Below, in pieces: positions 506 to 29,500 of a stretch of 64,000 nucleotides of DNA. The stretch covers positions 24,800,001 through 24,864,000 of the forward strand of contig NC_088854.1 of the NCBI RefSeq assembly GCF_963853765.1. The letters run 5' to 3'. The position numbers and the translations under genes are program-made. This stretch comes from Magallana gigas (taxonomy: Eukaryota). The notes below the pieces were generated by a model, which was not told where the DNA came from, ran no database searches, and saw only the letters and a list, made by a program, of their open reading frames with translations. How positions within the stretch are numbered: position 1 is the stretch's first letter; every line of letters begins with the position of its first letter.

Positions 506-563
506 ATGGATACCCTCTCCCTACTTGCGCTGCTCGTAGGCTTAGCCGTCTGTTCAGTTCATT
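506..563 (+). CDS. Coding exon 1: signal peptide MDTLSLLALLVGLAVCSVH(S)
   Basis: ATG at 506, hydrophobic core, phase-1 donor T|GTAAGT at 564. The polypyrimidine+AG at 491-499 suggests a non-coding exon further upstream. Confidence 0.85.
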
Positions 564-2439
564 GTAAGTTTTCTCTTTAAAAAAAACTCGACAATAAACA
601 CTTTAGTTTTGTATTATACTTGTGAGTAAAACAATGTCTTTTGTTGCTCGCTCAGTAAAATCATATCAGGACTTTGATTAGATTTTGGGTTATATGACAC
701 ATGCACTTGTTTCTGCATTGAAAGGCATGCGAATAGTATACTAAAGGGTAGACTTTACCGCAGAGACAAACTCCTGTGTTATAAATGTATAATGTTAAAT
801 TATTTAGGTATCATAGTTATGTAATATGAAACGACTTAACATCGGGAGTTACTCTAGAACCAAATAGATTCAGGGATAACTATACTATCATTATAATTTT
901 TACTGACCAAAATTTTATTTACGGGGTTTTGATTTAGAAAACACCATAGAAAACACCATTTAGTTTTATGAACACAAGTGAAAATAATGTATTGATTAAT
1001 CTTTAAGCGAATGCTTGTGTTGCACTGCAACATCATAAAGATATCATAATATAGTTTTCAAAAAATATTTTTGATGATAAATCCATGTAACTGGTTATTG
1101 CCCTTTGAATCTGTAGCTGTAGACCCACCGGACAATATTGGAAAGGAGTATGTACTGATGTTTATGGAAAACTTCAAATTAGAGAAAAATCGAAATTTTC
1201 CCCTGGAAGTTTACATCAGTACACCCGAAAAAACGCCAGCTCGTGTGACCATTAAATCACCCATTTCTGCCAATCCCCGGGTAGACCAAACAGTAACTGT
1301 TAATCCCGGCTCGGTGCAACGAGTGAACATAAGCGAGGCTTTCCGAATGGTAGGAAGCGTCCAATCCTCGAAAGGATTGCTGATACAGTCGGACCAGGAT
1401 ATAGCGGTGTATGGTGCTAACAAAGATACGTTGTCAAATGACGTGTATTGTGCGCTACCTGTAGACACGTTAGGCACCGAGTACTACGCTGCCTGCTATG
1501 GTCCAGCTCAGATTAAAACAGAACTTGGAGTCGCGTCCACTCAGGACAGCACCTCGGTAACAGTGACCCTTCCTAGCAAAGACAAATCCCTGACGGTCGA
1601 TTTTATGGGTAAAACGTATAAAGCTGGGGAAGTAATTCATACGAAATTGGACAAATACCAGACTTTACAACTTCAGAGTAGTCAGGATTTGACTGGGGCT
1701 CACATTGTAAGTGATAAACCAGTGGCTGCATTTAGTGGTAATATCAAAACAAATATCGGCACCGGAATATACGCTGACCATTTAGTAGAACAGTTGACCC
1801 CAGTTGATACGTGGGGTAAAAAATTTGTCACCGTTCCGATTCCAAAACGAACTACCGGGGATTTCTTCCGAATCATCGCCAGCGAGGACAATACTGAAGT
1901 TACAATTTCAGGCATGACCCCAATCAAGATTCCAAAAGCCGGAGAATGGGTACAAGTATCAATACCATCAGGCGAACATAAAATGGTTACATCTACTAAA
2001 CCGGTCATGCTAATGCAATACGTATTGAGTCAACAAAACGCCACGGAGCCTGCCGACCCTTCCATGATTACTATACCACCTTACGAGCTTTTTGGGGCCA
2101 AATATACCTTTTCAACACCTCAATACTCTCGGCCTGACTATGGTGCCGGATATTCCTACGAACACGAATTTATGGTCGTTGTCAAAGACGCAGACCGGAA
2201 TACGTTGCTTTTGGATGACAAACCGTTTCCATCGAACGCACATTGGACTACAATTCCAGGAACTGATCTTGTGGGTGGTTATGTTACCATTTCTGCAGGA
2301 TCCCATACTGTACGGAACACTGATCCCACGGCGCTCATTGGTGGATTTCTATACGGACATGCCTTTCACGAGTCTTATGGATTTCCAACCGGAATGCGAT
2401 TGGCTAAAATAAATGCCGTAAGTAGCTTTTGATTTCGAT

Positions 2440-5500: not shown

Positions 5501-8500
5501 AAAATATATAAGTGATAAATATAGACTCAAATGTTTAACTTATTCAAATTTTCTCTGCTGGCTTATTAGGTTACACAATCCCGTTTGTGAACTTCTCGCG
5601 CTTACAAAATATTTCCATGGTTAAGAATGAAAACTAATTAATAAAAATAATATCTGTATAAAAAAAAAACACCGAGAAAAACAGAGAAAAAAAATAAAAT
5701 TGATTTTTTTTTCCAAGATGATGATCAAGATGGTGAGACGGATGAAGACTGTGCGTTACCCCTTCCAGGTGGGAATGTATAGAATAAGAATAAATGATTC
5801 AGATTAACAGTACATGCGATTTATTTACGGTTAAGTATATTCCCATACAAAAAGAAATATCAGCAGGATGTTTTGCAATTTAGATATTTTAAAATCACAA
5901 CTTATGCAATAATATAAGTATATTGTACTTTAGTTGATGGCGGGTGGTCAAACTGGCAAAGTTGGGGTCAGTGCACAGCCTCCTGTGAAAACGGAACCAT
6001 GGCGCGCCAAAGAACATGCGACAATCCTGCACCAGCGTACGGAGGCCAAAACTGTAGTGGGTCAGGCCAAGAGACGAAGCCCTGTGACACGGGGAAAGCT
6101 TGTCCAGGTTTGATTTTTTTAGCGATAAATTTTTGGTAAATTGATTACGTTGCAGTCGGTACTTATGTTGCATTGTGTAAAAGTTCTCTATCATAAAATC
6201 GCGGACAATTATTTGATAAGGGGTTTCTATACGTCGTCGCAATCAAACGCCATTTGAAGTGAATGTTTTGTATTGTAATGTTGTTTAAGGGTACATCAGT
6301 TTCACGATTACGTGTTTCCCTTTTTACAGTGGACATCGACGCAGTGTGTAAGAAGAATAAGACTGCTATTGTTGTCAACCCTTTCAACTGTGCTCAGTAT
6401 TACGATTGCTCCAAGCAAGTCTCGGCATTTGGAAAGCCGTACCTGCAGGAATGCAAATACCCTGACCTTTTTTCGTCTGGTACCAACTCATGTGAACCGT
6501 TTACATCGGTTACTGGAAGTTGTGGCAGAAGGAAAGAAGCCCAAGCGCCATGTAAAACACTTTATCTATTCTCGTACCTTCCATCTGGAATCATTTGAAA
6601 TGCAATAATTTATATATATAGAAACATATACTGTAAACGTGGTTATATTGACGAGTTCAAAATTTGACGATTTTTTAGTAAGAGACAATTGGCGAGTTTT
6701 AATTTTGACGAATATTTGAATAAGAGTAAGAGTTATTTATCTTTGATTTCTTATAATGCCAGGGTTAGGGTTATCTTTCTTTGATTAAATTGTATGATCC
6801 CTCAGTGTTCCTGGACAATGGAACAACTAGGCGCAAGACAAGTCAACTTCGCCGGCTTGGGGGATAAGCGACAAATCACCGCTTTGTTTTGTGTGACTCT
6901 AGATGGTCACTTATTACCCCCACAACTCATATATTAGGGAACTACATCTATGTGTCATCCAAATATAAACTTACGGATGATTGGGCAATTACCCACTCAC
7001 CTAATCACTGGTCTACCGAGGAAACGATGTTAGAGTACATTGAGGGGATTATCGTCCCGTATGTTGAGGCTGTTCGCGAATACCTACCCGTGGCACAAAT
7101 AAATCAACCGGCATTAGCTATTTTCGATGTGTTTGCAGCGCATATAAGCAAAAAAGTCTTATCAGCATTGAAAAAAGCTAACATTCGATATGTGTTCGTA
7201 CCGGCGGGTTGTACTGACGAATTACAGCCGCTAGATCAAACAGTTAATAAGAAATACAAAGACCTTCTCAAAACCGAATTTCAAAACTGGTACTCTGAGA
7301 AAGTTCGCCAGAAACTAGAAAATCAAAAGCCGGGGGAAAACATCGGCTATGTTGACATAGACATGAGAACGTCGACAATTAAACCGCTTCATGCAAAATG
7401 GATGCATAAAGTTCATGATGTTATCAGCAAGGATTGCGACTTTCTTGCGAACTCTTTTACAAGCGTTGGTATTAATAAAATTAAACTTTGATTGAAAAAA
7501 AAGTCTGTACAGATTTGATGGAATAAAATTGTTCTTTGTATTTTGTTTTTATTCACTATACGATATTGCCTGAGGTAACAAAGTAGGTCAAACACGGCAT
7601 GATAATTACGCACGCAAAGTTATTATAGAATGTTGTGACGATTGAGTGATAATTGCATTTAAAACATGCTTGTTTAGATTTTATGGGTTTTTTCAATGCT
7701 AATTACGTGTTTTGTATCATTAACTTTGATCTAGTCCTAACGGGATAATGCCGATAAAAAATTCTGGTATTAATACGCTCTATATATGATGTGAAGTTTG
7801 GCGAGTGGAAATTTTGACGAGAAAACAAAAATCGCCAACATAGTCAAAATTAACACATCGTCAAAATTTCCACGTTTACAGTATTATATCTATCAGTAAT
7901 TCAATATTGCTACTGGCCATAGTTGTTTACCACTTGATAATTACCAATTAATAATATCATATTGTCTTGACCGTGTCTTTGCAGGTGATTACGTTCAAAA
8001 TAAATGTAATTCTACTGACCCAACTTGTGAACCCTGCCCAAAACGATTACCATCGTGTGTTGGACTACCTGATGGCAAACAGATATTTCCAGGAAAGCAG
8101 CTTGCTCCAGATTATATTGAATGTCAACAAAACAGGACAATGGAGGTCAAGAAATGTCATTTGCAATATTTTAATCCCCAGATGAAAGATTGCAAAAATT
8201 ATTCCCGACGTAAGTATCATTGCATTAAAATGTCAACATTTTGTTTATTAACGTTTTGTCAGCATTTTGATTTTTAAAAGAGTCCCCGGCGTCGTTTAGA
8301 TTGTCGTTGTCAGCAGCGTTAGTTTTTCAATTTTTATATATATTCTTTCCTAGAACCACTCAGCCAGATTCAACCATAGTATTTACATGTAGGAGGTTGT
8401 TAAAAAGAGAAAAAACGATTATTTTTGAAAATCGCACTTATAAAAAAACTACAAATATATTGTAATTTTGAAGAATTTTTTTCTAAAGAACACACGAACC

Positions 8501-11500
8501 AAACTTTTAACGTTTCAAACAAATATTTTTTAAAATAAAGAATAATTTAAAGTCTACTTAAACTGAACCTCATTGACCATTAAAAAAGAGATTGGAGCAA
8601 ATGAAAAAATGCAAATTTCTACACAATAATGTAAAGAGGGAAATTCTACATAGGAAAATGTAGGGGAAATATACAAGCACCCCTCTCATGCAAGCAGCAT
8701 ATTGTTTTAAATCAGATACAAATATTTGATCCCGGTTGTGGTGGCATTAAAAGTTTAGAGATATACACTTACGTTTTTAGGTGATACAAAAAGGAAATTC
8801 TACCTCAGACTAGTAGTGTGACAGACTGGCCTCTGGATTTTTTTGCGTTGATTTTAGTTTGCTTAATCTATGTTTTCTTTGTTTGATAGCTGTTTTAAAC
8901 TTTCTGTGCTCAAAAAACCAGTCGGCTGCCATTCCGGATCCTGCAAATTGTGCCAAATATTATGACTGCTCTAAACTGTTCACGTCGACGACTCTTCAAG
9001 ATATGACAACGGAATGCAAATACCCGGATCTATTCTCTGTAAAAGATGGCAAGTGCCAGGACTTCAAAAGTGTTAATTGCACCACAAGAAAAGAACCAAT
9101 GGCACCATGTATGTTATTCTTTTCTGTATTCTCATTGAAAATCACGAAACAAATGGTTGAATCCTCCAATTCGTTATGAACTTATATCATTTTGTTTAAT
9201 TAATTAAGCGATACTGTAACATATGGTTATTTATTCATACAAACGAATATATTTGCTTGCCATTTCAAGACCAACATACGAAAAAGTTACGAAAACGTTT
9301 AAATAATGAACAACCTGAGCCTATTTATTTTTCTCTCGATTTTTCAGTTGTTATAGCCAGTTTTTATTTTCGTTCAACTTTAAAAGAAAAAAAAATGAAT
9401 TCCCTAAAGTTCAAACACCAAGTCGCAAGAGGAAAACATTTTAGTAAAAACCTTATCATTATGTCACATGCAATACTAGTACTAGTATGTACCATAATGC
9501 AATAAAGAATAAATCCGCTCTCCCCTGTCACAACATTTGCTGAAATTAAAAGAATGTGTTTTTTCGAGTCCTTTGTGCGATTTAAAAAGTTTCCAAAAGT
9601 AAATGATAACGATATTATTTGTATGTTTGCAACGTGAAAGTAAACGAAAATTGTATCATTGCAAAAATAATTGGATGGCTATGGTATGAATAATAATATA
9701 CACATTCTTCGAATTTTAAACAAAAAAACCCCAACCTTTTCTTTTATGTGCTTCTATCAGCAGTTGTCACCACACGTATTTTCTGTTACATGTATGATAG
9801 CAATATATACAATTTGCCCTTATAGATATAACACAATTAAGTTTAAAACATAATTTAAAAATAATTCATTTCAGGCGAATATGAGCAGAATCTGTGTCCA
9901 GCCAACAACCCGTCCTGCGCTCCCTGTCCTAAACGTCTGCCGTCTTGCATTACTTTGCCTGATAATCAGGAGGCGTTTCCAGGAAAATTATGGCAAGCAG
10001 ATTACATTGTGTGCGACACCAATAGAACCATGAATATAACTACGTGTCCTCAAGGAGAATATTTCAATCCCAGACTAAAGAAATGCATGAAATCTGTTCC
10101 CCCAGGTAAACCAGCTATCTGTTGATTTACGTGTCACTCTTTCTACTAAAGATTCGGCGGATTGAAATAAATTCATTTGAAAATGAGACTCAAATATGGA
10201 AACCGCAATAATCAAAGAATTTCCAATTTTACTTTTCAGTGGACGTTCCGGACTACTGCTCAGCTCATCCCAAAGCGCTGCTACCAAAAGAGGACAACTG
10301 CGGCCAATACATCAATTGTTCAGATCCAGGATTTGATGGGAATCACACCATGGAGTGTCAGTATCCTGATCTTTTCTCTGTGACCACCATGTCGTGCCAA
10401 TGGTTCGAGAATGTGACCTGTGATAGTCGTATGGAGCCACAAGCACCTTGTGAGTAGTTTGTTCGATCATTTTGCTTTGGAAGAAGTATCATTATAATTA
10501 AATGAGTCTATAAAAGTCCCATTTTCCTCGTTTGTCCCTGATAGGCGAGTACCATCAAAACCAATGTGCACCGACAAACAAGAGTTGCATCCCTTGCAAA
10601 AAGAGACTCCCAAGTTGTGTGACATTATCTGATGGAAAGAATGCCATTGATTGGTTGCTCTGGAAACCTGATTATGCCGAATGTTACAAGAACAGGACCA
10701 TGAAAATGGAGAAATGTCCCACTCGCTTCTTTGATCCAGTTCAGAGAAAATGTACCGACAAGGCCAACCCAGGTGAGTGTCGCATTTTGATCTGTGTGTG
10801 ACACACAGCTGTGTTGATTACACCACATGTTTGAAAAGTTGAAATCACTTTCTGTGTTTGTTTATTAATATCATTTTATTTATCTTTAGGCGATATTGAC
10901 GAAATCTGCAAACAGAACCCCAAAGCCATTTTGCGGAAGAAAGATAACTGTGCTCAGTATTACAACTGTTCCGTATCTAACTCCTCCTATGGAGGTCACT
11001 TGCAGGAATGTAAATATCCGGATCTGTTCTCCACCGTCAGTATGGAATGTGAAAATTTCAAGACTGTAACTTGTGACAACAGAACAGAACCCCAGGCTCC
11101 ATGTGAGTTTTGAAGGATATGAGGACAAGTATTTGAATGATTTTCTAACTAATTATGACGTTCCGTCAAAATGTGGTAATGTGTTTTGTATTTACAAATG
11201 ATTATGTATAATTCAGGTGAATATGTTCAGAATATGTGTCCAGCCAACAACCCGTCCTGCGCTCCCTGTCCTAAACGTCTGCCGTCTTGCATTACTTTGC
11301 CTGATAATCAGGAGGCGTTTCCAGGAAAATTATGGCAAGCAGATTACATTGTGTGCGACACCAATAGAACCATGAATATAACTACGTGTCCTCAAGGAGA
11401 ATATTTCAATCCCAGACTAAAGAAATGCATGAAATCTGTTCCCCCAGGTAAACCAGCTATCTGTTGATTTACGTGTCACTCTTTCTACTAAAGATTCGGC

Positions 11501-14500
11501 GGATTGAAATAAATTCATTTGAAAATGAGACTCAAATATGGAAACCGCAATAATCAAAGAATTTCCAATTTTACTTTTCAGTGGACGTTCCGGACTACTG
11601 CTCAGCTCATCCCAAAGCGCTGCTACCAAAAGAGGACAACTGCGGCCAATACATCAATTGTTCAGATCCAGGATTTGATGGGAATCACACCATGGAGTGT
11701 CAGTATCCTGATCTTTTCTCTGTGACCACCATGTCGTGCCAATGGTTCGAGAATGTGACCTGTGATAGTCGTATGGAGCCACAAGCACCTTGTGAGTAGT
11801 TTGTTCGATCATTTTGCTTTGGAAGAAGTATCATTATAATTAAATGAGTCTATAAAAGTCCTATTTTCCTCATTTGTCCCTGATAGGCGAGTACCATCAA
11901 AACCAATGTGCACCGACAAACAAGAGTTGCATCCCTTGCAAAAAGAGACTCCCAAGTTGTGTGACATTATCTGATGGAAAGAATGCCATTGATTGGTTGC
12001 TCTGGAAACCTGATTATGCCGAATGTTACAAGAATAGGACCATGAAAATGGAGAAATGTCCCACTCGCTTCTTTGATCCAGTTCAGAGAAAATGTACCGA
12101 CAAGGCCAACCCAGGTGAGTGTCGCATTTTGATCTGTGTGTGACACACAGCTGTGTTGATTACACCACATGTTTAAAAAGTTGAAATCACTTTCTGTGTT
12201 TGTTTATTAATATCATTTTATTTATCTTTAGGCGATATTGACGAAATCTGCAAACAGAACCCCAAAGCCATTTTGCGGAAGAAAGATAACTGTGCTCAGT
12301 ATTACAACTGTTCCGTATCTAACTCCTCCTATGGAGGTCACTTGCAGGAATGTAAATATCCGGATCTGTTCTCCACTGTCAGTATGGAATGTGAAAATTT
12401 CAAGACTGTAACTTGTGACAACAGAACAGAACCCCAGGCTCCATGTGAGTTTTGAAGGATATGAGGACAAGTATTTGAATGATTTTCTAACTAATTATTA
12501 CGTTCCGTCAAAATGTGGTAATGTGTTTTGTATTTACAAATGAGTATGTATAATTCAGGTGAATATGTTCAGAATCTGTGTCCAGCCAACAACCCGTCCT
12601 GCACTCCCTGTCCTAAACGTCTGCCTTCTTGCATTACTTTGCCTGATAATCAGGAGGCGTTTCCAGGAAAATTATGGCAAGCAGATTACATTGTGTGCGA
12701 CACCAATAGAACCATGAACATAACTACGTGTCCTCAAGGAGAATATTTCAATCCCAGACTAAAGAAATGCATGAAATCTGTTCCCCCAGGTAAACCAGCT
12801 ATCTGTTGATTTACGTGTCACTCTTTCTACTAAAGATTCGGCGGATTGAAATAAATTCATTTGAAAATGAGACTCAAATATGGAAACCGCAATAATCAAA
12901 GAATTTCCAATTTTACTTTTCAGTGGACGTTCCGGACTACTGCTCAGCTCATCCCAAAGCGCTGCTACCAAAAGAGGACAACTGCGGCCAATACATCAAT
13001 TGTTCAGATCCAGGATTTGATGGGAATCACACCATGGAGTGTCAGTATCCTGATCTTTTCTCTGTGACCACCATGTCGTGCCAATGGTTCGAGAATGTGA
13101 CCTGTGATAGTCGTATGGAGCCACAAGCACCTTGTGAGTAGTTTGTTCGATCATTTTGCTTTGGAAGAAGTATCATTATAATTAAATGAGTCTATAAAAG
13201 TCCTATTTTCCTCATTTGTCCCTGATAGGCGAGTACCATCAAAACCAATGTGCACCGACAAACAAGAGTTGCATCCCTTGCAAAAAGAGACTCCCAAGTT
13301 GTGTGACATTATCTGATGGAAAGAATGCCATTGATTGGTTGCTCTGGAAACCTGATTATGCCGAATGTTACAAGAATAGGACCATGAAAATGGAGAAATG
13401 TCCCACTCGCTTCTTTGATCCAGTTCAGAGAAAATGTACCGACAAGGCCAACCCAGGTGAGTGTCGCATTTTGATCTGTGTGTGACACACAGCTGTGTTG
13501 ATTACACCACATGTTTAAAAAGTTGAAATCACTTTCTGTGTTTGTTTATTAATATCATTTTATTTATCTTTAGGCGATATTGACGAAATCTGCAAACAGA
13601 ACCCCAAAGCCATTATGCGGAAGAAAGATAACTGTGCTCAGTATTACAACTGTTCCGTATCTAACTCCTCCTATGGAGGTCACTTGCAGGAATGTAAATA
13701 TCCGGATCTGTTCTCCACTGTCAGTATGGAATGTGAAAATTTCAAGACTGTAACTTGTGACAACAGAACAGAACCCCAGGCTCCATGTGAGTTTTGAAGG
13801 ATATGAGGACAAGTATTTGAATGATTTTCTAACTAATTATGACGTTCCGTCAAAATGTGGTAATGTGTTTTGTATTTACAAATGAGTATGTATAATTCAG
13901 GTGAATATGTTCAGAATCTGTGTCCAGCCAACAACCCGTCCTGCACTCCCTGTCCTAAGCGTCTGCCTTCTTGCATTACTTTGCCTGATAATCAGGAGGC
14001 GTTTCCAGGAAAATTATGGCAAGCAGATTACATTGTGTGCGACACCAATAGAACCATGAACATAACTACGTGTCCTCAAGGAGAATATTTCAATCCCAGA
14101 CTAAAGAAATGCATGAAATCTGTTCCCCCAGGTAAACCAGCTATCTGTTGATTTACGTGTCACTCTTTCTACTAAAGATTCGGCGGATTGAAATAAATTC
14201 ATTTGAAAATGAGACTCAAATATGGAAACCGCAATAATCAAAGAATTTCCAATTTTACTTTTCAGTGGACGTTCCGGACTACTGCTCAGCTCATCCCAAA
14301 GCGCTGCTACCAAAAGAGGACAACTGCGGCCAATACATCAATTGTTCAGATCCAGGATTTGATGGGAATCACACCATGGAGTGTCAGTATCCTGATCTTT
14401 TCTCTGTGACCACCATGTCGTGCCAATGGTTCGAGAATGTGACCTGTGATAGTCGTATGGAGCCACAAGCACCTTGTGAGTAGTTTGTTCGATCATTTTG

Positions 14501-17500
14501 CTTTGGAAGAAGTATCATTATAATTAAATGAGTCTATAAAAGTCCAATTTTTCCTCGTTTGTCCCTGAAAGGCGAGTACCATCAAAACCAATGTGCACCG
14601 ACAAACAAGAGTTGCATCCCTTGCAAAAAGAGACTCCCAAGTTGTGTGACATTATCTGATGGAAAGAATGCCATTGATTGGTTGCTCTGGAAACCTGATT
14701 ATGCCGAATGTTACAAGAACAGGACCATGAAAATGGAGAAATGTCCCACTCGCTTCTTTGATCCAGTTCAGAGAAAATGTACCGACAAGGCCAACCCAGG
14801 TGAGTGTCGCATTTTGATCTGTGTGTGACACAGCTGTGTTGATTACACCACATGTTTAAAAAGTTGAAATCACTTTCTGTGTTTGTTTATTAATATCATT
14901 TCATTCATCTTTAGGCGATATTGACGAAATCTGCAAACAGAACCCCAAAGCCATTTTGCGGAAGATAGATAACTGTGCTCAGTATTACAACTGTTCCGTA
15001 TCTAACTCCTCCTATGGAGGTCACTTGCAGGAATGTAAATATCCGGATCTGTTCTCCACTGTCAGTATGGAATGTGAAAATTTCAAGACTGTAACTTGTG
15101 ACAACAGAACAGAACCCCAGGCTCCATGTGAGTTTTGAAGGATATGAGGACAAGTATTTGAATGATTTTTTAACTAATTATGACGTTCCGTCAAAATGTG
15201 GTAATGTGTTTTGTATTTACAAATGATTATGTATAATTCAGGTGAATATGTTCAGAATCTGTGTCCAGCCAACAACCCGTCCTGCGCTCCCTGTCCTAAA
15301 CGTCTGCCGTCTTGCATTACTTTGCCTGATAATCAGGAGGCGTTTCCAGGAAAATTATGGCAAGCAGATTACATTGTGTGCGACACCAACAGAACCATGA
15401 ACATAACTACGTGTCCTCAAGGAGAATATTTCAATCCCAGACTAAAGAAATGCATGAAATCTGTTCCCCCAGGTAAACCAGCTAGCTGTTGATTTACGTG
15501 TCACTCTTTCTACTAAAGATTCGGCGGATTGAAATAAATTCACTTGAAAATGAGACTCAAATATGGAAACCGCAATAATCAAAGAATTTCCGATTTTACT
15601 TTTCAGTGGACGTTCCGGACTACTGCTCAGCTCATCCTAAAGCGCTGCTACCAAAAGAGGACAACTGCGGCCAATACATCAATTGTTCAGATCCAGGATT
15701 TGATGGGAATCACACCATGGAGTGTCAGTATCCTGATCTTTTCTCTGTGACCACCATGTCGTGCCAATGGTTCGAGAATGTGACCTGTGATAGTCGTATG
15801 GAGCCACAAGCACCTTGTGAGTAGTTTGTTCGATCATTTTGCTTTGGAAGAAGTATCATTATAATTAAATGAGTCTATAAAAGTCCAATTTTTCCTCGTT
15901 TGTCCCTGAAAGGCGAGTACCATCAAAACCAATGTGCACCGACAAACAAGAGTTGCATCCCTTGCAAAAAGAGACTCCCAAGTTGTGTGACATTATCTGA
16001 TGGAAAGAATGCCATTGATTGGTTGCTCTGGAAACCTGATTATGCCGAATGTTACAAGAACAGGACCATGAAAATGGAGAAATGTCCCACTCGCTTCTTT
16101 GATCCAGTTCAGAGAAAATGTACCGACAAGGCCAACCCAGGTGAGTGTCGCATTTTGATCTGTGTGTGACACAGCTGTGTTGATTACACCACATGTTTAA
16201 AAAGTTGAAATCACTTTCTGTGTTTGTTTATTAATATCATTTTATTCATCTTTAGGCGATATTGACGAAATCTGCAAACAGAACCCCAAAGCCATTTTGC
16301 GGAAGATAGATAACTGTGCTCAGTATTACAACTGTTCCGTATCTAACTCCTCCTATGGAGGTCACTTGCAGGAATGTAAATATCCGGATCTGTTCTCCAC
16401 TGTCAGTATGGAATGTGAAAATTTCAAGACTGTAACTTGTGACAACAGAACAGAACCCCAGGCTCCATGTGAGTTTTGAAGGATATGAGGACAAGTATTT
16501 GAATGATTTTTTAACTAATTATGACGTTCCGTCAAAATGTGGTAATGTGTTTTGTATTTACAAATGATTATGTATAATTCAGGTGAATATGTTCAGAATC
16601 TGTGTCCAGCCAACAACCCGTCCTGCGCTCCCTGTCCTAAACGTCTGCCGTCTTGCATTACTTTGCCTGATAATCAGGAGGCGTTTCCAGGAAAATTATG
16701 GCAAGCAGATTACATTGTGTGCGACACCAATAGAACCATGAACATAACTACGTGTCCTCAAGGAGAATATTTCAATCCCAGACTAAAGAAATGCATGAAA
16801 TCTGTTCCCCCAGGTAAACCAGCTAGCTGTTGATTTACGTGTCACTCTTTCTACTAAAGATTCGGCGGATTGAAATAAATTCACTTGAAAATGAGACTCA
16901 AATATGGAAACCGCGATAATCAAAGAATTTCCAATTTTACTTTTCAGTGGACGTTCCGGACTACTGCTCAGCTCATCCTAAAGCGCTGCTACCAAAAGAG
17001 GACAACTGCGGCCAATACATCAATTGTTCAGATCCAGGATTTGATGGGAATCACACCATGGAGTGTCAGTATCCTGATCTTTTCTCTGTGACCACCATGT
17101 CGTGCCAATGGTTCGAGAATGTGACCTGTGATAGTCGTATGGAGCCACAAGCACCTTGTGAGTAGTTTGTTCGATCATTTTGCTTTGGAAGAAGTATCAT
17201 TATAATTAAATGAGTCTATAAAAGTCCAATTTTTCCTCGTTTGTCCTTGATAGGCGAGTACCATCAAAACCAATGTGCACCGACAAACAAGAGTTGCATC
17301 CCTTGCAAAAAGAGACTCCCAAGTTGTGTGACATTATCTGATGGAAAGAATGCCATTGATTGGTTGCTCTGGAAACCTGATTATGCCGAATGTTACAAGA
17401 ACAGGACCATGAAAATGGAGAAATGTCCCACTCGCTTCTTTGATCCAGTTCAGAGAAAATGTACCGACAAGGCCAACCCAGGTGAGTGTCGCATTTTGAT

Positions 17501-20500
17501 CTGTGTGTGACACACAGCTGTGTTGATTACACCACATGTTTAAAAAGTTGAAATCACTTTCTGTGTTTGTTTATTAATATCATTTTATTTATCTTTAGGC
17601 GATATTGACGAAATCTGCAAACAGAACCCCAAAGCCATTTTGCGGAAGAAAGATAACTGTGCTCAGTATTACAACTGTTCCGTATCTAACTCCTCCTATG
17701 GAGGTCACTTGCAGGAATGTAAATATCCGGATCTGTTCTCCACTGTCAGTATGGAATGTGAAAATTTCAAGACTGTAACTTGTGACAACAGAACAGAACC
17801 CCAGGCTCCATGTGAGTTTTGAAGGATATGAGGACAAGTATTTGAATGATTTTCTAACTAATTATGACGTTCCGTCAAAATGTGGTAATGTGTTTTGTAT
17901 TTACAAATGAGTATGTATAATTCAGGTGAATATGTTCAGAATCTGTGTCCAGCCAACAACCCGTCCTGCGCTCCCTGTCCTAAACGTCTGCCGTCTTGCA
18001 TTACTTTGCCTGATAATCAGGAGGCGTTTCCAGGAAAATTATGGCAAGCAGATTACATTGTGTGCGACACCAATAGAACCATGAACATTACTACGTGTCC
18101 TCAAGGAGAATATTTCAATCCCAGACTAAAGAAATGCATGAAAGCTGTACCAAAAGGTTATTTGTTTTTGGGGGTTATTTTTGCTGTTTTTTATAATTTC
18201 ATTGGTATAAACATTATTCATTGCTTTCGGACATTATTATATGCTAAATTCATTTGTAGATAATAATTTTTCTACGTTTTCATCTACACAGTTGACGTCC
18301 CTGACTACTGTGCTGCCAATACCAAAAGAGTTCTTCCTGATCCAGATAATTGTGCACATTATTATAACTGCTCATCTGTTCCCAGACAAGGCGTCCCGAG
18401 AATATCTTCTGCCACTGCCTTAGGGAAATATGGCGCTGAATGCCAATATCCAGACTTGTTTGATGACCTAACACAGCAATGCAGAAATTTTACTGACGTG
18501 AATTGTTCCACTCGTACAGAACCACAAGCTCCATGTGAGTATACCATTCTGTGTGCTAGGTTTTTAATGGAAGCAATGCAATACAAGAGTGTTATGCTCA
18601 TACATCGAAACATTAATGTTTTATTTATATTTTTGTACTTTCAAAGGAGATAAGTGACATCTGTATTGTGAGAAACTTTCTTTAAAAAAACTATTTTTAT
18701 AAATTTTATAAACAGATATGCAAATTGTAAGCACAGAATCAATTTTTAAAGTTCTTTTTTAAAGTGAAATTTAAAATCATAATAAATATGGGTTACGATA
18801 TCTGATTTTTTTAGATTGAGTTCACCAAAATTGTATACATACCTTTAAACTCTTCATCTCAAATTTTTGTCCGCCCGAAAAATGGCTTTTCAAAAAGGTC
18901 AACTTATAATGACTTATCAATTTAAAGAATTTTGTTTATTCCAGGTCAGTATCAGCAAAACCTATGTCCTGTAGGCGATCCTTCGTGTGCACCATGTCCA
19001 AGCCGTTTACCATCATGTGTGGGAGAACAAAATGGATATAAGGAGTTTCCTACTCGGCTTTGGAAATCTGACTTTGTCAGGTGCTTTCTTAACAGAACAA
19101 CGGAAATTGACAAATGTTCATCGAATGAGTATTTCAATCCAAGGCTTAAACAATGTATGGAAAATGTTCTACCTGGTAAGTATTTGTTATATTCTAATAT
19201 GTCTCACCTGTTTTCAATCCTTGGTGGGTTTAGATTATTTTACCTAAATTGTATCTTTATCTATAAATAGGTAAGCACATTTGTAAGTTGCGTTATGACA
19301 CTAGACTCTCAGATACCCCATCAGTTGCATGTCATAATTGTAAATAAAAAATTTATCCACAGACAAGCAAAAACCGACGTTCATCTTGATGTGCAGAAAA
19401 CAATAAACTGTAAACAACTATAAGAGGGAAATTAAACTGAAATAGTCTCTACTATTTAATTTAAAACAAACTTTAAATGCAAGGAAGCATTGTGAGTTTC
19501 TATTAAAGTGGCTCTCTTGTATTGATTTAAAGATTGCATGGAAAACTTGCACGATTTCTGTTCGTCAGAGACAATGGTATTAGTCCATATCAATATAGCA
19601 AATATGCTATAAAGTTATTAAAATGAAAAAAAAACATTTAAGGACAAATCTTTATCAATGGCCTTTTCAATCGCTTTTGGAGTTGAACATTGCTGAATAT
19701 TTAGATATCAAGTATTTATATTGAAGTATGATATGATATGATTTTACTATCTAGTTGACGTGCCCGACTATTGCACGGCGAATCCAACTAAGCTTTTGCC
19801 AGATCCAGATAACTGTGCTCACTATTTCAACTGCTCAGACCCTACTGTGAACGTTATTACTAGACAACAGAATCAACAAACAGGAAGTTACAGAAAAGAA
19901 TGCCCTTACCCTGATCTGTTTAATCCAGTCTTGCAACAGTGTGGAATGTTCACAACAGTAGAATGTAAAACACGCCCTGAGCCACAGGCGCCATGTAAGA
20001 AGTGTTTTGAACAATTTATGTACATGAGAAATATACTTCTTTTTATGTGTGTATATCTTAGTATAGTGTATAATTATAAAAGACATAAAATTAGAGTACA
20101 TAAGAAATAACAATCCTTTCTTCAACAACTGAGAATAGCTTATTTTTTATGACTTATTTTACAAACCTAGTACCCAAACTTGTTAAAGATAGACACGTGT
20201 ATAATCCAAAGATTTTAAGTTCAACGTTGAATAATTTTATTTAATTTTCATTTTTTTTTTAATTTTTAAAAATGTAATGATATGATAAATATCAGTGATA
20301 CTAAAGTGTAACAAAATAATCCATACATGCTCAATATTACACAACACATTTTTTAAACGATGTTTGCATTTAAGGCATCAATAGGTGGAACTATTTCTGA
20401 GCTGATCAGTATTCTGTTCACAGGTGAATATCAACAAAATTTGTGTGACTCAAAAAATAGTTCGTGTAAGCCTTGTAAAGAGAGACTTCCAGATTGTTTA

Positions 20501-23500
20501 AACTATCAAGATGGACAGCAGGCCTTTCCTAATAAATTATGGCAGAATGATTACATTATCTGTGCTAAAAACAGAACCATTAGCGTGGACAAATGCAAAC
20601 CTCCGGAGTATTTTAATCCACGACTGCTGAAATGCACGGAACGTGTGGAGCCAGGTACATATGATACCCTCCGAGATTTATAGTTTTGTTGAAATAATGC
20701 TTAACTAACAAGTTCAAATTTATGTTTTTACTTTTCTCCATTTGTAGTTGATGTACCAGACTTTTGCTCCGTACACAAAAATGAAGTTCTCCCAGACTTG
20801 GACAACTGTGCCAAATATTATAACTGTTCCGATCAAAATGGACTTCATATGGAGTGTTCATATCCAAAATTGTTCTCAGATCAGACAAGGTCATGTGAAA
20901 ACTTCACCACAGTAGCATGTACAAGACGAAAAGAACCGCAAGCTCCGTGTAGGTACATCTTTGTGATAGTAATAAGGGTGCTCTGTCGGTCTCATATTTT
21001 AATGTTCACGTGTCATTGTTTAACATTGTTTTAAGAAAGATATGAATTGATTTTTCAAGGTTTTAATTTTTAAAAGTCATTCGATGATATGTAATCATGC
21101 ATTCCTTTCAAACTGTTATCATTATGTGCCAAATATAATTATATGTGTTGTCAGTTGACTTTTTATTATTAAATCACATTGAACAACACATATTAAAATC
21201 AAATAGTGTTAGCTGAGCCTCGTAACTGTATTCTCTGTGATACTCTTTCGATCTCAGGTGAGTATGACCAAAACAAATGTAACTTAACGGACACTAGCTG
21301 TCGGCCCTGCCCAGAGCGACTACCCAGCTGTAGAGGTTTGCCCGACGGAGATCAACCAGCCAATGGCTTCCTGTGGACGGATCGCTTTGTCACGTGTGTA
21401 CAGAACAGAACCCTGGCTGTCAGTAGATGTAACCCTGGAGCAATATTTGATCCTACTCAGCTGAACTGTGTAGAACAAATACCTAAATGTACGTTTCTTC
21501 ATCTTAAAACGTCTTTGCAATGAAAGCATTGTTATGAAAATGTTCATAAGAACTGATTTTACTCGTTAATAATTTTGATATCTTATAGCCAAAATTGATG
21601 AATTCTGTCGAGCAAATCCAAAGTCTGTGAAAGCGCATCCCTCCAACTGTGCATTGTTCTACGACTGTTCATCTGTACAGTCTCCTTTGGGTCATCATCT
21701 CGTGGAATGTCCATACCCTGATCTGTTCGATTCCACTAGATTACAATGTGCCAATTTCACAGAAGTCAAGTGCAATAAGACAAAGAAAGAACCACAGGCC
21801 CCATGTGAGGATTCTTAATCAAAGAATAGATTTGCCAACGAAAGTTTAAAGAAAATAGGGTTTAAAGATTTCTATTAAATTTAATTATCTTCTTAAATGT
21901 GATTCGTTAGATTTATGTAATGATACATGTAAGAAATGTTTTGCATAAAATGATTATTATTTTGGATGTATATATTATATTATCCCTTTGAAGTGTCAAA
22001 TGAATTTCAGGTATAGATATTTAAAACACATTACTCCTCACTATCAATATATATAATTGATGTATATAATGGATTTGTTGTATTTTGATACGAAAAATTG
22101 ACAAATCTTTCATTTTTCAAGATAAGCATTCATTAGGTGAAAATTTAAATACTGTTAATTTTCAATTGACAAGATATGTGTATAATATCATTGACCTCTC
22201 GATAAAATTTTAACTTTGATAAAATCAAAGCACAGTATGACTAAATTAGTGTTTCATAAAATAGTTATTTACATCATTTTTAGGTGAATACCAACAGAAT
22301 CTGTGCAATAACTCTGATCCTACCTGTGTCCCTTGCCCTTCTCGTTTGCCATCCTGTAAAGGAAAACCAGATGGATTGAATCCTTTTCCAAACCAGTTAT
22401 GGAATCCATCATATATCGAATGCTTTAAGAATAGGACAATTGATATCAAAAAGTGCAGCACTGGATACTTTAATCCCAGATTGAGAAAGTGTATGGAACC
22501 AGTTGAGAAAGGTAAATTTCATTTTTAAAGCATTTGCTGAATAAAAGCAAATTTAAATGCCAACTATAAAATGTTATTGGTGTCAACTAAGGCATTTTTC
22601 TCGTAATATAATTATTTTGCTTTATTTATTTAGCAAAATTTATTCTTGGACGAATTTTAAAAAAAACGAATTTTGAATTGTAAAGTTCTATCAATTAAAG
22701 TATAGACAATCATTTTCATTTGGTATCCATAACTATTGTGTACCATGAATGGTCTAACTGCGTCACCTTATGTTTTAGTTGATATACCTGATTACTGCAA
22801 GGCTCATCCGACCGAACTTTTGCCTGATCCAGACAACTGTGCTAAGTTTTTCAACTGTAGTGAATCTTTGATCAAGCCACGATCTAGTCGATCAAACGTA
22901 GCTATAGGCAAGTTCGGCTATGAGTGTCCTTACCCAGAGCTTTACGATACCATGCTACAGATGTGTAGCAATTTCACAAAAGTTAGATGTACTACTCGAT
23001 GGGAACCCATGGCTCCTTGTAAGTATTTCAAATTTATATTTTGTAAGTATGTATGTGTATTATGAAAATACTAGCATATCACAAAAATTTTACCAGTCAT
23101 TAAAAGGAACATGATGACGTCAAATTATTAAACATTTTTTGTGACTTATTTCAATTTTAGCCTTAAACCAATTACAAAACTTAACAAATTATTTTTATAT
23201 TTTTTCATATAGGTGAATATGATCAAAATCTATGTGACTTGACAGCCAACAACTGCACAAAGTGTCCGGAACGTCTTCCGTCGTGTGTTGGCAGCAGTGA
23301 TGGACTCAACCCATCTCCAAGACATTTGTGGAAAGATGATTACATTTCATGTTTTCTAAACAGAACTATGGTTATTTCCAAGTGTCCAAAATCTCAGTAT
23401 TTCAATCCACGTTTATCAATGTGTGTGGATTATGTTCCACCTGGTACGGATTACGTCAATAAAATGTCCACAATACTTTAATGTATATAAGCCACTAAAA

Positions 23501-26500
23501 TATGTCAATAAAATGAATTTTGGTATTCATGAACATGTATGAAGATGATATTTAATAAAGTATATATTTTGAATAGGGTATTGACTTAAACGTTTATATT
23601 TTGTTTTTTTCAGTGGATGTTCCGGAATATTGTCAGGCCAATCCATCGGATGTCCTTCCAGATCCCGATAACTGTGCACAATACTTCAACTGCTCAGATC
23701 CAGCAATACGCGGGTCCATAAATGGAGCTGTTAACCTCCCAGAGAATTACAGAAAAGAATGTCATTACCCTGATCTGTTTGATCCTGTCCATAAAGAATG
23801 CCAGACTTTTACTGCCGTAAATTGTAGCAAACGAAACGAACCTCAAGCACCTTGTAAGTAAAGTAAAAGTTAATGAATTCAAAAAAGATTTTAAACATTG
23901 GTTTCCCTGTTTAAAAAATTCATCATAGCAGAGAGTTATCAGTCAAAACATGCACATTGCATATTGAATAATATTGATGTCCTATGATATTACTTGTATG
24001 ATACATGTATTTGTACTTTTCTTATGCAACAGTACAACTTCGCGTAACATTTTGATTATATTGCATATACTTTGCTTATGGCATTCTAGCTTTTTAAGTA
24101 ATTTATTTATTTTAATTACTTACTGTTACATGCTCTGTATAACTGTTTCAGGTGAATATAAGCAGAATATCTGTACGTCTACAAATGTTTCGTGTCAAGT
24201 TTGTTCAGAAAGATTACCAGATTGCCGTGGCCGCCAGGATGGAGCACATGCATTTCCCAACAAACCTTGGCAGAGAGATTTCATCCAATGTTACTTAAAT
24301 AGGACAATCAGTATTGCACAATGCCCTATGGGAATGTACTTCAACCCAAGGACTCAGTCTTGTAAAAGAAATGTTGAGCCAGGTAAGAAGTAAATTATAA
24401 AGTAAAAAAAATCACCTTGTAAACAAGCTTCGATTTTAGTCTTGGAAAATGGTTAATGACAGATTTTTTTCTTAATTTAGATTTTACGCCGTGTGAACTC
24501 TTGGACAAATTAAAATCACTTTTAAAAATCTGCAAATCTGCATTTTTTGTGTCGGCAATAATCATGATGGATTTAGAATTTTGCACTTAATACAATGCTA
24601 AAAAATACCATGCACGTTTTGTAATAAAAAATGTATATTGTGAATTCAGTGGATGTACCCGGATATTGCACAGTCCATCCTAACGCAGTTCTTCCTGATC
24701 CTGATAACTGTGCCAAATTCTACAACTGCTCTGAAAAGAATGGTTTACACAATGAATGCACATATCCAGATCTCTTTAATCCTGATGGCCAAATTTGCCA
24801 AGAATTTCTCAATGTCACATGTTCAACTCGAAAGGAACCACAGGCACCATGTAAGTTTCTTCTTAAAATTCACTCAATTTAAAATACGTTATCCAAATTT
24901 TCGTAGCCAATGAAGAAATATTGTTAATTTTGAAAAATTGAATGAAATTAAAACAATGTTGATATAATTATTTTTTTATATTTGATTGTAATTTAGCAAA
25001 TCATTGAGAATATTTATTATTTTGAGCGAGTAAAAATTTGCGTCACCAGTTTGCTTGTTAAATTAACTTATGTCATTCTCAAAGAAATTTTAAGCGTTGA
25101 CCTTTTTATAAGCCATAGGATAGATAGCGTACAAATTTACCACCACAGATGAATAATTATCGTAATGCCAAACTATAATATCTCTTGTGAACAACTTTTG
25201 GAATGAAGCTTTCTTAATTTATATATACTTTTGTTGTTTTTGTCTGATTTACATAAATTGATAATATTTAATGAACGTAAAGAAAAGAAGAATAATCTAA
25301 CTTTAAGAATCACTCAATTTTCAAATCTTGAAAGGCATACATGCAAAACTCAGTGAAGGAATACAAAATAGATTTTTTTTTTAAATTAAGTACATATTTA
25401 TGTATGTTTAAGGTGAATATGATCAAAATTTGTGTCCAAATTCTGATCCAAGCTGCGCACCTTGTCCTGAGCGATTGCCAAGCTGTCGTGGTCTTCCAGA
25501 CGGCAACCAGGCCGTGTCAATGGAACTCTGGACATCGAGATATATCACTTGTTTTGTCAACAGAACTATGAAGGTTAACAAATGTCCATTAGGAGAGATT
25601 TTTGATCCAATACAGTTAAGATGTATCAACAAAATTCCCCAAGGTAAACAGTTTTGTTTATCTTGCACAGCACCCTAAGTCTTTTTTTATTAAAACAGAC
25701 TTACTGTTTCACTATTTTCACTGTTAAATTATAATTAGGTCTTTATTACATGACATGAAAGTAAACCCATATCTTTGTATTCGACTTTTTTTAAAGATTG
25801 CATAGCCTTTCTGTTTTATACTTAAAAATTGGTGACGACATAAAAAGTGAAATCGATATATCTCAATTCAACGTTTCAAATACATTGGATTTGTAAAGAG
25901 AATTTACACTGAATTCTGCCTCGTTTACTTACTTGTGAGCGTATTACAGCTATATTTTCAAATCCACCTTTTGAACACTTTCAACATTTTCTTGGTGCAA
26001 TATATTTGATGGTCATTTTCTAAACCCGGCATATATAGGTGATATGGGACATCTGTCGATATTAATGTGGATTAAAGTACATTATAATTAAAATACTTTC
26101 ACCAATACTTTCATCGGTTTAGAATTTTCAAATTTTACAATATTTAACCCAAGAAAATATGTTTTTAACATTTTTTCTACAGGAAAAAAAATTAGAATAT
26201 CCAGCGGGATTCGAACTCATGACTTACAGATCCGTAGTAAGCCCTCTAACCCACTGTGTTTCGCTGATGACAATATTAGGAAAGAAACTACTTATAAAAT
26301 TATACATGATTTTCTTGTTTATTTCGATAAATATTACGTCACAACATGGAGGTGTCCCATACCACCTTTAACTGGCATATATAGGCAGTTGTAGATACGT
26401 ATCTATACGTATATAGCATTTGAAATAAAATAGGATTTAATTTCGTAAACTGTATTGATCTATCATACTATGAATAAAATTGGCCTCCGATGCATTTATT

Positions 26501-29500
26501 TTATTTCTACAGCACATAACTTTAAAGAACCTATTGAAATGTCTAATACATGTAGTTGAAATGACTTTTGTGTAAAAAGAAACAAATAATAATGATGAAT
26601 TCACCATTATTGGATTTTTCCCTTTTCTTATCAGGCAATGTAGCAGAGTTTTGCAAATCCAATCCCGGGGCTGTAAAAGAGGTTGACAATAACTGTGGAC
26701 AGTATTACAACTGCTCGGCGCTCTCGATGTTTGGTACTTACGTTCATGAGTGTCCATACCCAGAGCTATTTGACTCGAACATGCTTACATGCAGACAATT
26801 TACAGAAGTGAACTGCGACAACAGGACAGAACCCCAGGCTCCGTGTAAATATTTTATTTTAAAATTTTCAATACTGAAACAAAAAACCTTGATATTTTAT
26901 TAAACGTCTCTTTAATTAAAGAAGGCCACCAAACTGTTAATATATTGAATATTCTGATAATTTTTAATAACTAACGAAATTCGTGTTATCATCCAAAAAA
27001 ATTAGGGGGGGGGGGGGCAAACGTGTCTTTCATAATAGTAATTTTTTTTTATACAAAGTCAACTGAGTTGTGAATTTTTACATTGAATAATTATTTTTTA
27101 TTTCATTTTGATAATTTTGTTTTCTATATAATTTAACGATTTTTAAGGTGAATATGAAGTCAATATTTGTGACCCGAAAAATTCCTCCTGCTCACCATGC
27201 CCTGTCCGATTGCCCTCTTGTAGAGGGTTACCAGATGGAACGAACTCTGTGGCAAACAAAGAATGGACAACGGCATTTATTGTTTGTGTTCAAAATAGAA
27301 CACTAGACATCAATAAATGCAAGACTGGATACTTCAATCCGAGAATAAGAAAGTGCATGGAAAACGTTGAAAAAGGTCTATATATTTGTACTGTAATACA
27401 ATTATTCTCTTATCATGTGCATATGTACTCACACAACCACTTTTTAAATGGATGTATCTTTCTTAGCAGTTTTAAAGTTTGATATAATTGTTTAAATACA
27501 TGTATCAGATAACTAGTTTAAAAACTTTATGATCTTTTATCATTTAGATATAAGTTTGGTAAAAAAAATTCTTAATGGCTATATTTCACAAATTCCTTAA
27601 TGAATCCTTTTATGTTTTAGGCTAACTTGTTACTGTGTATTTTTATTTAGTGGATGTACCAGATTACTGTGCTGTGCATCCTGCAGACATTTTGCCAGCC
27701 CCGGATAACTGTGCTCACTATTACAACTGCAGTGCTTTAAATACTGCCCTTCCACCACGAATGATAAGTAGAAAGCTGATGTCAGGTGTACTAGATGCTC
27801 ATGAAATGGAATGCACTTACCCTGACTTGTTTGATGTCTCATCCAGAAGTTGTAGAACCTTTACCACTGTGACATGCAATTCAAGACCAGAACCCCAAGC
27901 ACCATGTAAAAACTTCTTTATATCCAATGTGGATACTTTTAAAATGCTTAACCTTTGTTTCTTGAAATTTGTTAAATTCCAATAGCAGTATCTCTAACTA
28001 ATCTTGATATTTTTAATTAAGGTGAATATCTACAAAACATCTGTCGACCATCAGACCTGAACTGCAAACCATGTTCTGAAAGACTACCATCTTGTGTGGG
28101 GAAGGAAGATGGTTCCAATGTGTTCCCATCACGAGTTTGGAAGCCAGACTACGTAATATGTTACCATAATAGAACAATTTCTTTTGAGAAATGTTCGCAA
28201 GGTTATTTCCACCCTGTCGCAAAACTCTGTACAGAAGTAGTTGATCCAGGTATTTCAAACGATTGTAAAAAGAATACAAATGTATAACATAAAAAACAAG
28301 ATACTTTATCAATTTATTAATAATAATACATTATTTTATCATTATTCCAACAGTTGATGTTCCTGATTATTGTGTAGCCAATCCGAAAGACGTCCTTCCA
28401 GATCCTGACAATTGTGCCCATTTTTTCGACTGCAATAACAAAACAACTATGGTACACAGGGCTGCCCATGTTGTATCGATACAGTCATATACAAAAGAGT
28501 GCCAATATCCAGATCTCTTTGATTCCAACAATCGGCAATGTAGGCTTTTTACAGCTGTTAAATGTGAAACTAGACCGGAACCTATGACACCGTGTAAGTA
28601 CATACCACTTATATTGATTATATCTTGACATTAGAGATTAGATAAGAACATAAATACAAGTTTGTTTATAACCCATAAATATCTTCTAAAGCATTGTATA
28701 TATAATAATATATTATGCCACGTGTTGGATTATTTAATTAAAGCATGTTTTAGGGTAGCAATTAAAATAAGAAATTCACTTTGTTTCTAAAAATTACCAT
28801 AAATAAAAATATGAAATAAATTGAAGATTGATTTAAACAATTACTTAATTATCTTGGTTACATACAATTTTCATTTTAGGTGAATACCAACAGAATCTCT
28901 GTAAAACTTCAAATTCTTCTTGTGAGAAATGTCCCGCAAGATTGCCTTCATGCAAAGGGATGACTGATGGTCCACATTCTTTCCCGAACAAATTATGGCT
29001 GCAAGACTACATTTTCTGTCACAAGAACAGAACCATACAAACCACGAAATGTCCAACCACACAATATTTCAATCCAAGACTCAACATTTGCACGGATGTT
29101 GTGGAGCCTGGTAAGAGATATCAAACCCTCACTCATGACGTTCAAGGTTATTTATCTATCTATCTAAGATGTTAGCCTTTCAAAAATGTTAATTCTATGA
29201 TTGACAGTTGACGTTCCTCAATACTGCCCTGTACACAGAAACAAAGTTATCCAAGATCCTGACAACTGTGCCAAGTTTTACAATTGTTCCGACGTATCAC
29301 ATTCCGAATGCACCTATCCAGACCTCTTTTCGTTGGTGACATTTAGATGCGAACGGTTTTTGTCTACCTCTTGTGACCAGAGGCCGGAGCCCCAAGCTCC
29401 ATGTAACGCCATGATTTTCTTTTCTCTTCTGTTGCAACGTTGAAGTTTTATCAACACACTGAAAGATCATCAATTACAAGATATTTGTATTTTTATTGCG

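Follow-up and report, generated by a model that had tools for sequence, protein, structure and literature searches.

An in-frame four-exon tandem array, probably old and kept alike by concerted evolution, in a giant CBM14-type gene of the oyster Magallana gigas

Introduction

The KIV-2 array of the human LPA gene, a primate novelty, and the spider silk genes are the closest described counterparts of the element reported here, a tandem array of near-identical four-exon units at 9866..18156 (+) of a 64,000-nucleotide (nt) stretch of the Magallana gigas genome (RefSeq assembly GCF_963853765.1, contig NC_088854.1, positions 24,800,001 to 24,864,000 of the forward strand; hereafter the window). In LPA, a two-exon unit of about 5.5 kb is repeated, and more than 40 protein size isoforms are known (PMC6314250, PMC4378929). 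In the silk genes (Flag and Argiope MaSp2), the iterated introns are 94-99.7% alike within a gene while diverging fast between genes and species, and this likeness has been proposed to aid the homogenising of the coding repeats by unequal crossing-over (PMC9779670).

The oyster array shares with KIV-2 the organization of a multi-exon coding array with near-identical introns and exons, in which every unit adds whole disulfide-knotted domains in frame. Its unit differs in having four exons and four domains (two double modules), in being only 1.34 kb long and in residing in a CBM14 host protein of roughly 8,000 amino acids (aa). Furthermore, the oyster cassette arrays apparently persist across deeply diverged genera. 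Variation in copy number is, for the oyster, only expected. As in silk genes, which include a two-exon/two-intron core unit (PMC9779670), the repeat consists of exon-intron units. However, silk is built of low-complexity Gly/Ala/Pro motifs and is homogenised over the whole gene, while the oyster gene encodes folded cysteine-rich units, has only 12 of its 49 modules homogenised and displays four alternating intron types. The insect peritrophins and multi-CBM14 mucins, likewise secreted and made of serial six-cysteine peritrophin-A domains, have many fewer CBM14 domains, about a dozen at the upper end, compared to about 99 CBM14-type domains in the oyster gene, which also shows a strict alternation of two domain types (P and Q, see below) and encodes an FCGBP-type head, TSP1 and discoidin.

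No publication on the oyster gene or its array was found in a literature search. The logic of such arrays is known while the gene and the array are new, and the locus offers a clear parallel among invertebrates to the LPA KIV-2 and spider silk cases. The evidence given below is best explained, with a probability of about 0.68, by a genuine in-frame multi-exon array which is old, intragenic and subject to concerted evolution and purifying selection, and not by a one-off recent burst.

Structure of the array

The array includes six full units arranged head to tail and followed by a seventh copy of the first exon, which makes 6.17 units. A repeat search of positions 8000-21000 gave start-to-start spacings of 1342, 1342, 1342, 1341, 1341 and 1343 base pairs (bp), with six full copies 95-100% identical and a partial seventh one, and direct reading of the exons led to the same result, bearing out a preliminary description of the window in which a 1,342-bp four-exon unit in about six copies had been proposed. 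Compared pairwise, the full units are 98.6-99.6% identical. The array was not detected by Tandem Repeats Finder with its longest period of 500.

Each unit consists of exons A, B, C and D of 231, 210, 228 and 213 nt, respectively, amounting to 882 nt or 294 aa (33.4 kDa), and encodes 28 cysteines and 10 N-glycosylation sequons. The introns, which in unit 2 are 134, 95, 117 and 114 nt long, split a codon after its first base; all 25 array exons are open and free of stop codons, with AG/GT at every border and phase 1 throughout. A module is understood here as a pair of a P-type (canonical) and a Q-type (derived, eight-cysteine) CBM14-like half-module, the two types strictly alternating, and the addition of two modules (294 aa, about 33 kDa) in frame with every unit, as proposed earlier, agrees with these figures. 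Exon C also contains open frames of 116-120 aa on the opposite strand; these were discarded, since mirror frames of this sort commonly accompany a coding exon.

All the units lie on the plus strand. Unit 1 (9866..11207) contains exons A, B, C and D at 9875-10105, 10240-10449, 10545-10772 and 10890-11102, and in unit 2 (11208..12549) these are found at 11217-11447, 11582-11791, 11887-12114 and 12232-12444. The exons of unit 3 (12550..13891) are located, in the same order, at 12559-12789, 12924-13133, 13229-13456 and 13574-13786, those of unit 4 (13892..15232) at 13901-14131, 14266-14475, 14572-14799 and 14915-15127, and those of unit 5 (15233..16573) at 15242-15472, 15607-15816, 15913-16140 and 16256-16468. 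Unit 6 (16574..17916), with exons at 16583-16813, 16948-17157, 17254-17481 and 17599-17811, is overlapped by two contigs from other samples, L004 and L010, described below. The terminal copy (17917..18156) consists of a seventh exon A at 17926-18156, after which a unique intron follows.

The copies become homologous at about 9866, within the acceptor of the first exon A, and the initial ~20 nt of that exon diverge from the inner copies. On the right, similarity to the inner copies tapers off some 12 nt short of the donor of the seventh exon A. The edges of the array, that is to say, escape homogenisation. The limits of 9875 and 18156 given in the preliminary description coincide exactly with the start of the first exon A and the end of the seventh.

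The array is the only homogenised part of the host gene and takes up 12 of its 49 module pairs and the extra exon A. The remaining 37 modules have diverged to about 50% identity, with no module pair outside the array exceeding 65% aa identity. The introns of neighbouring modules had been described as unalignable, and the four introns of the unit indeed gave 24 matches inside the array and a single 21-nt chance match elsewhere in the window. An Rfam scan found no RNA families in the unit and its left flank, so the conservation of the introns is not due to an intronic RNA gene.

Variation among the copies

Among the six full copies, 34 of the 1,343 columns are variable. When the left edge zone is excluded, two copies differ on average by 0.53% in their exons and by 1.81% in their introns, and variable columns make up 10 of 861 exonic versus 17 of 452 intronic positions (Fisher p = 0.003). 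The introns had been considered as conserved as the exons; they are near-identical as stated, but the two are not equal, and the 3.4-fold lower difference in exons indicates that purifying selection acts on real copies. Only five distinct amino-acid changes are found across the six 294-aa copies, which are 99-100% identical at the protein level.

The copy-specific single-nucleotide variants, to which attention had been drawn earlier, are present and are shared in blocks. Copies 1-3 represent one subtype, and the other comprises the second halves of copies 4 and 5 and the first halves of copies 5 and 6, with the sharing switching mid-unit near unit column 655. The variant groups {3,4}, {4,5}, {5,6} and {4,5,6} are mutually incompatible with one tree. 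Such a mosaic is what unit-offset duplication together with conversion would produce. In addition, exon A ends with Pro-Lys in the seventh copy, as in two related contigs from other oysters (L001 and L011), and with Pro-Pro in all six full copies. The retention of Pro-Lys in the edge copy only indicates that one substitution has spread through the array, though not into the edge copy.

The cassette in other oyster lineages

Seven contigs (L002, L003 and L005-L009), derived from three ENA assemblies and four further runs, contain a unit which is 73-80% identical to that of the window and matches nothing else in the window. In L003 and L005 there are exact 141-nt terminal overlaps, equal to the k of the k141 assemblies, which imply cycles of 1358 and 1360 bp, and a 30-nt terminal overlap in L007 implies a cycle of 1357 bp. 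L002 and L008, with lengths of 1357 and 1356 bp, are circular permutations of one cycle, while L006 is linear, spans 1.22 periods and has two ends 95% alike. The cycles of this type are closed within intron 3/exon D instead of exon A, so they do not correspond to the loop expected from a single unit followed by an extra exon A. A third type is represented by L011, a Joint Genome Institute (JGI) contig whose first 236 nt, including an intron, recur at 98.3% identity after 1410 bp.

After rotation and alignment, the three array types show identical exon lengths, GT-AG sites and open frames. Between types, the exons are 78-81% identical with no indel and the introns about 48% identical, that is, unalignable; amino-acid identity is 85-89%, nonsynonymous divergence (dN) 0.08-0.10, synonymous divergence (dS) 1.7-4.3, which means saturation, and dN/dS 0.02-0.05. 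Within a lineage, on the other hand, the copies are 98-99% alike. The three types are taken to be orthologues, one from each of three oyster lineages; paralogy, considered below, retains a small probability. One more contig, L001, starts inside exon C and is 88% identical to the window over C-D-A and 81% over the right flank to 23158; it is an orthologue from a closer relative. An exon-A alignment search and a degenerate DNA pattern search of metagenome contigs revealed no further loci.

Between lineages, amino-acid identity is higher for the cassette (85-89%) than for the unique modules of the host gene (68-85%, mean about 74%), which would fit homogenisation combined with selection on the array as a unit. 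The preliminary description had left a choice between a very recent expansion and one being homogenised. The latter is favoured, because cassette arrays occur in two other, deeply diverged oyster lineages, dS is saturated and the introns are unalignable, and because a similar array is present in the orthologous gene of a freshwater mussel (see below); "recent" may be kept for the last homogenising events, not for the origin of the array.

Relatives in other molluscs

The search with exon A among protein representatives gave 279 relatives at E <= 0.001 among 1.84 billion proteins, and the named ones are all "Chitin-binding type-2 domain-containing" or hypothetical proteins from bivalves and gastropods. 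Several of the others proved to be open frames in short contigs belonging to other samples. A full-length oyster protein was not among the matches of the protein searches.

The closest parallel is found in the orthologous gene of the unionid freshwater mussel Sinanodonta woodiana, where the protein KAL3884667.1 (3,101 aa) consists of seven copies of a 441-aa three-module block with 97.7-100% identity and its neighbour KAL3884668.1 contains three more such blocks. In the corresponding genomic locus (L012, CM100983.1:20936256-20980546) a 3,517-bp six-exon unit is present in at least 11 copies with 98-100% identity, and the array runs off the end of the locus. The mussel copies differ pairwise by 0.54% in the marked exons and by 2.2% in the rest.

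Like the oyster array, this one is built of P/Q modules and begins soon after a head, being preceded by a gene model with IgGFc_binding and TSP_1 domains, the same architecture as in the window. It differs in the three-module cassette and in being annotated as separate hypothetical proteins, although three consecutive gene models (the head, the 3,101-aa and a 1,337-aa one) look like one giant gene split by annotation. No description of the Sinanodonta array was found in the literature. The P-type exons of the mussel match oyster exons B and D best (55-59%) and the Q-type exons do not, so homology of the two arrays is only hinted at by these alignments.

Origin and maintenance of the array

The arrangement of one half-module per exon with all introns in phase 1 would allow blocks of whole exons to be gained or lost with no break of frame, whichever run of exons is affected. 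Unequal homologous recombination together with gene conversion among the 1.34-kb units is the probable mechanism; it would homogenise exons and introns alike, and purifying selection would meanwhile preserve the coding sequence in each copy. An old array, presumably inherited by several oyster lineages from a common ancestor, has most likely been turned over continually, and the copies would for this reason always look young. Within-array divergence is 1.8% in the window, 1.7-5% in L011 and L006 and 2.2% in Sinanodonta. Arrays equally "young" in four lineages (about 2-5% in introns) are expected of a steady state and not of four coincident bursts. As for the initial event, the array comprises six units and one exon and its homology ends at exon borders on both sides, which suggests that it may have originated by exchange between two neighbouring Q-type exons.

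Each unit would add two rigid double-domain modules to the protein, and copy number would consequently set both its length and its valency. Length variants are an unavoidable product of unequal exchange, and polymorphism of the copy number, in steps of 33 kDa, is therefore expected. More speculatively, the array may be ancient and oyster-wide or possibly even bivalve-wide, and may have been selected since its copy number is a tunable trait providing length alleles of a matrix cross-linker; this extension is put forward only tentatively and is to be regarded as less probable than its opposite. If it is true, populations carry a spectrum of protein lengths altering the mechanics or the pathogen binding of a chitin-containing matrix such as the lining of the gut, the mucus or the framework of the shell.

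In this gene, whole folded-domain exons are kept identical together with their introns, seemingly throughout the divergence of oyster genera, while the other 37 modules drift, and the presence of both kinds in a single gene constitutes a natural experiment on which repeats get homogenised. Should the copy number vary, the length of a giant chitin-matrix protein would be a simple trait to score against shell, gut or disease characters in a farmed species. The locus also calls for caution with annotation, as the gene is split or shortened by pipelines, with three models in Sinanodonta and partial models in Saccostrea.

Alternative explanations

The strongest competitor of an old, continually homogenised array is a series of independent recent bursts, in which a cassette present only once in the ancestor would have been amplified separately and recently in each oyster lineage, with a different cassette amplified in the mussel and no concerted evolution. 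The low divergence within every array agrees with this, the phase-1 exon design makes amplification easy, and the periods differ (1342, about 1358 and 1410 bp in oysters, 3,517 bp with three modules instead of two in the mussel). However, the differences among the oyster periods are fully due to intron length, the exon lengths being identical, and the same four exons in the same order are found in all three oyster lineages. Three hits on the same two of about 39 distinct modules, each of them young, are less parsimonious than one old array, and independent bursts are therefore considered unlikely.

It may also be supposed that the repeat is real but over-expanded or collapsed by the assembler, six being not the true number for the haplotype. 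Heterozygosity is high in oyster genomes, and some assemblers cope poorly with arrays of 1.3-kb units that are 99% identical. The number of six comes from the assembly, and the short-read contigs of other samples break inside the array. These contigs, which belong to the same species, nevertheless reproduce its critical parts: L004 (1,207 nt), with six private variants, is 98.9% identical to 16150-17354 and crosses the D-to-A junction together with the intron, and L010 (2,507 nt, from another run) is 99.5% identical to 16827-19335 and extends from the last unit across the seventh exon A into the unique right flank. Both the tandem junction and the right edge therefore occur outside this assembly as well. 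The window is free of N runs, and the 34 variable columns, with their block structure, two unit subtypes, mid-unit switches and enrichment in introns, are unlike polishing errors or stacked reads. A wrong copy number of this kind is thus improbable, and the earlier view that copy-specific variants argue against a simple artefact is upheld.

A further alternative is that the arrays of the L003 and L011 types belong to other giant CBM14 genes of the same oyster genome and are uninformative about other species, both types being known from array-internal sequence only. Against such paralogy, the sample sets are disjoint: open frames of the window type come only from Logan runs, and those of the L003 type from the three ENA assemblies and four other runs. 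A single-copy module, the fused P-Q exon at 37384-37824, shows the same three lineages, with a 118-member cluster near the window sequence and clusters of 19 and 1 members at 71-72% identity, the latter two 73% identical to each other and derived from different runs; such unequal cluster sizes would result from uneven sampling of species and not from paralogues within a single genome. A fused-exon run, SRR10852514, is numbered next to SRR10852517, which carries an array of the L003 type, although an exact-sequence look-up did not find such an array and the orthologous unique module within one run, only in these adjacent run numbers. Moreover, contig L013 is colinear with modules Q32-P36 of the window over eight exons at an orthologue-like 68-85% aa identity, and RefSeq fragments from Saccostrea cucullata lie at the same distance of about 70% to other unique modules. 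Paralogy is accordingly given even less credence than a misassembled copy number.

Expression of the locus agrees with ordinary splicing. The stretch 7900-11200 is present in 20 public runs from 11 studies, and six RNA runs contain 0.18-0.30 of its sampled 31-mers, with the best at 0.28-0.30; by our own count about 0.35 of the 31-mers in this stretch are wholly exonic, which is the ceiling for a fully spliced transcript, so the best RNA runs fit a spliced transcript with most of the exonic 31-mers and no intronic ones. Use of the cassettes one at a time or optionally, as in a cluster of alternative exons which would not lengthen the protein with each copy, is very hard to believe despite the symmetric phase-1 exons, whose skipping stays in frame, and the lack of a full-length transcript among the sequences seen, given that the copies are 99-100% identical in protein so that a choice among them gives no diversity, the splice sites are equally strong in every copy, and known multi-exon arrays such as LPA KIV-2 are included in full (PMC6314250).

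Several observations weigh against the interpretation as an old array under concerted evolution. A word search with the spliced mussel segment and the oyster exons found no spliced transcript or protein across the D-to-A junction. L004 and L010 carry the copy-specific variants of the window in new combinations, but Logan contigs through repeats may be chimeric, which makes these combinations weak evidence of reshuffling, and the count of six units comes from this one assembly. With the other oyster arrays known from their interior, the decision between shared ancestry and repeated amplification depends on parsimony, and the assignment of the L003 type to a separate species depends on disjoint samples, adjacent run numbers and matching divergence. 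Finally, near-identical blocks are absent in the annotated relatives from Tegillarca, Potamilus, Lottia and Bulinus.

Domain type and possible ligand

Exons A and B match Pfam CBM_14 (PF01607, cutoff 22.1 bits) with 28.9 and 29.9 bits, respectively; exon D, with 21.2 bits, is just under the cutoff and exon C gives no CBM_14 match in Pfam. The fused P-Q exon reaches 38 bits. The AlphaFold model of the fused P-Q module has a predicted local distance difference test (pLDDT) value of 95.2 and a predicted template modelling (pTM) score of 0.84, and its best match in the PDB according to Foldseek is EHEP from Aplysia (E = 2.6e-4). The other Foldseek matches, namely CHIT1 CBM14, Der p 23, Avr4 and tachycitin, are single-domain and weak (E 0.2-0.8, probability 0.44-0.96).

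EHEP of Aplysia kurodai (PDB 8IN3/8IN6) is, like the oyster product, a secreted mollusc protein and contains three peritrophin-A domains, but it has only 207 residues and binds phlorotannin (PMC10619976), and the template modelling (TM) score of the match is only 0.29 since the domain arrangement differs. The host protein is, as predicted from its domains, a secreted giant of CBM14 (peritrophin-A) type domains. It probably acts as a multivalent extracellular scaffold binding chitin or another glycan matrix, the ligand being suggested by the domain type; a chitin ligand is called into question by the reports that neither EHEP nor Der p 23 binds chitin (PMC10619976).

Other features of the host gene

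The likely first exon (506..565, +) starts with the ATG at 506, encodes a hydrophobic, signal-peptide-like start of 20 residues and ends with a GTAAGT donor. It is followed on the same strand by an exon coding for an IgGFc_binding domain of the FCGBP N-terminal type (1050..2429; PF17517, E = 3.6e-69) and by a thrombospondin type 1 (TSP_1) exon (5918..6136; PF00090, E = 1.2e-12). The module region (6330..53529, +) comprises, in a splice-aware model, 97 exons or 49 P/Q pairs with a total of 21,747 nt, corresponding to 7,249 aa with no stop. All exon lengths are divisible by 3, and the introns are without exception in phase 1. In a tblastn search of the window, the four exon products gave 98 alternating matches on the plus strand between 6332 and 53513. 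The region is followed by a discoidin domain (F5/8 type C) split between 60803-60982 and 62495-62692 (+; PF00754, E = 3.2e-9 and 3.2e-6) and by a terminal canonical CBM_14 exon (63630..63818, +; PF01607, E = 2.1e-12, 47.4 bits). The host protein thus has at least 7,249 aa (roughly 8,000 aa) and about 99 CBM14-type domains.

The fused P-Q exon contains no intron, and it is a single open frame also in two other oyster lineages. Its counterparts there (L013:2551-3111; P0178, P0179) show 71-72% aa identity to the window and 73% to each other, which means that the intron was lost long ago and that the lineages have the loss in common.

An older super-repeat of four modules has left traces at 18292-32341 (modules 15-28), where a series of P exons of about 240, 240, 201 and 210 nt occurs three times and the best module matches are found at an offset of four with 55-62% aa identity (e.g. 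Q16/Q20/Q24 and P17/P21/P25). The host gene seems to have grown by cassette duplication earlier too.

Simple and satellite repeats are located in the non-coding parts of the gene. A perfect (TC)37 microsatellite (2444-2517) lies directly 3′ of the IgGFc_binding exon, and the intron between the head exons and the TSP1 exon harbours a 43-bp satellite with a short palindromic motif in two blocks (4376-4617 and 5238-5434). A 166-bp satellite of 6.5 copies with 86% identity occupies 59146-60227 in the intron region before the discoidin exons, and between these and the last CBM_14 exon there is a Ser/Thr/Asn-rich, mucin-like open frame at 62944-63270.

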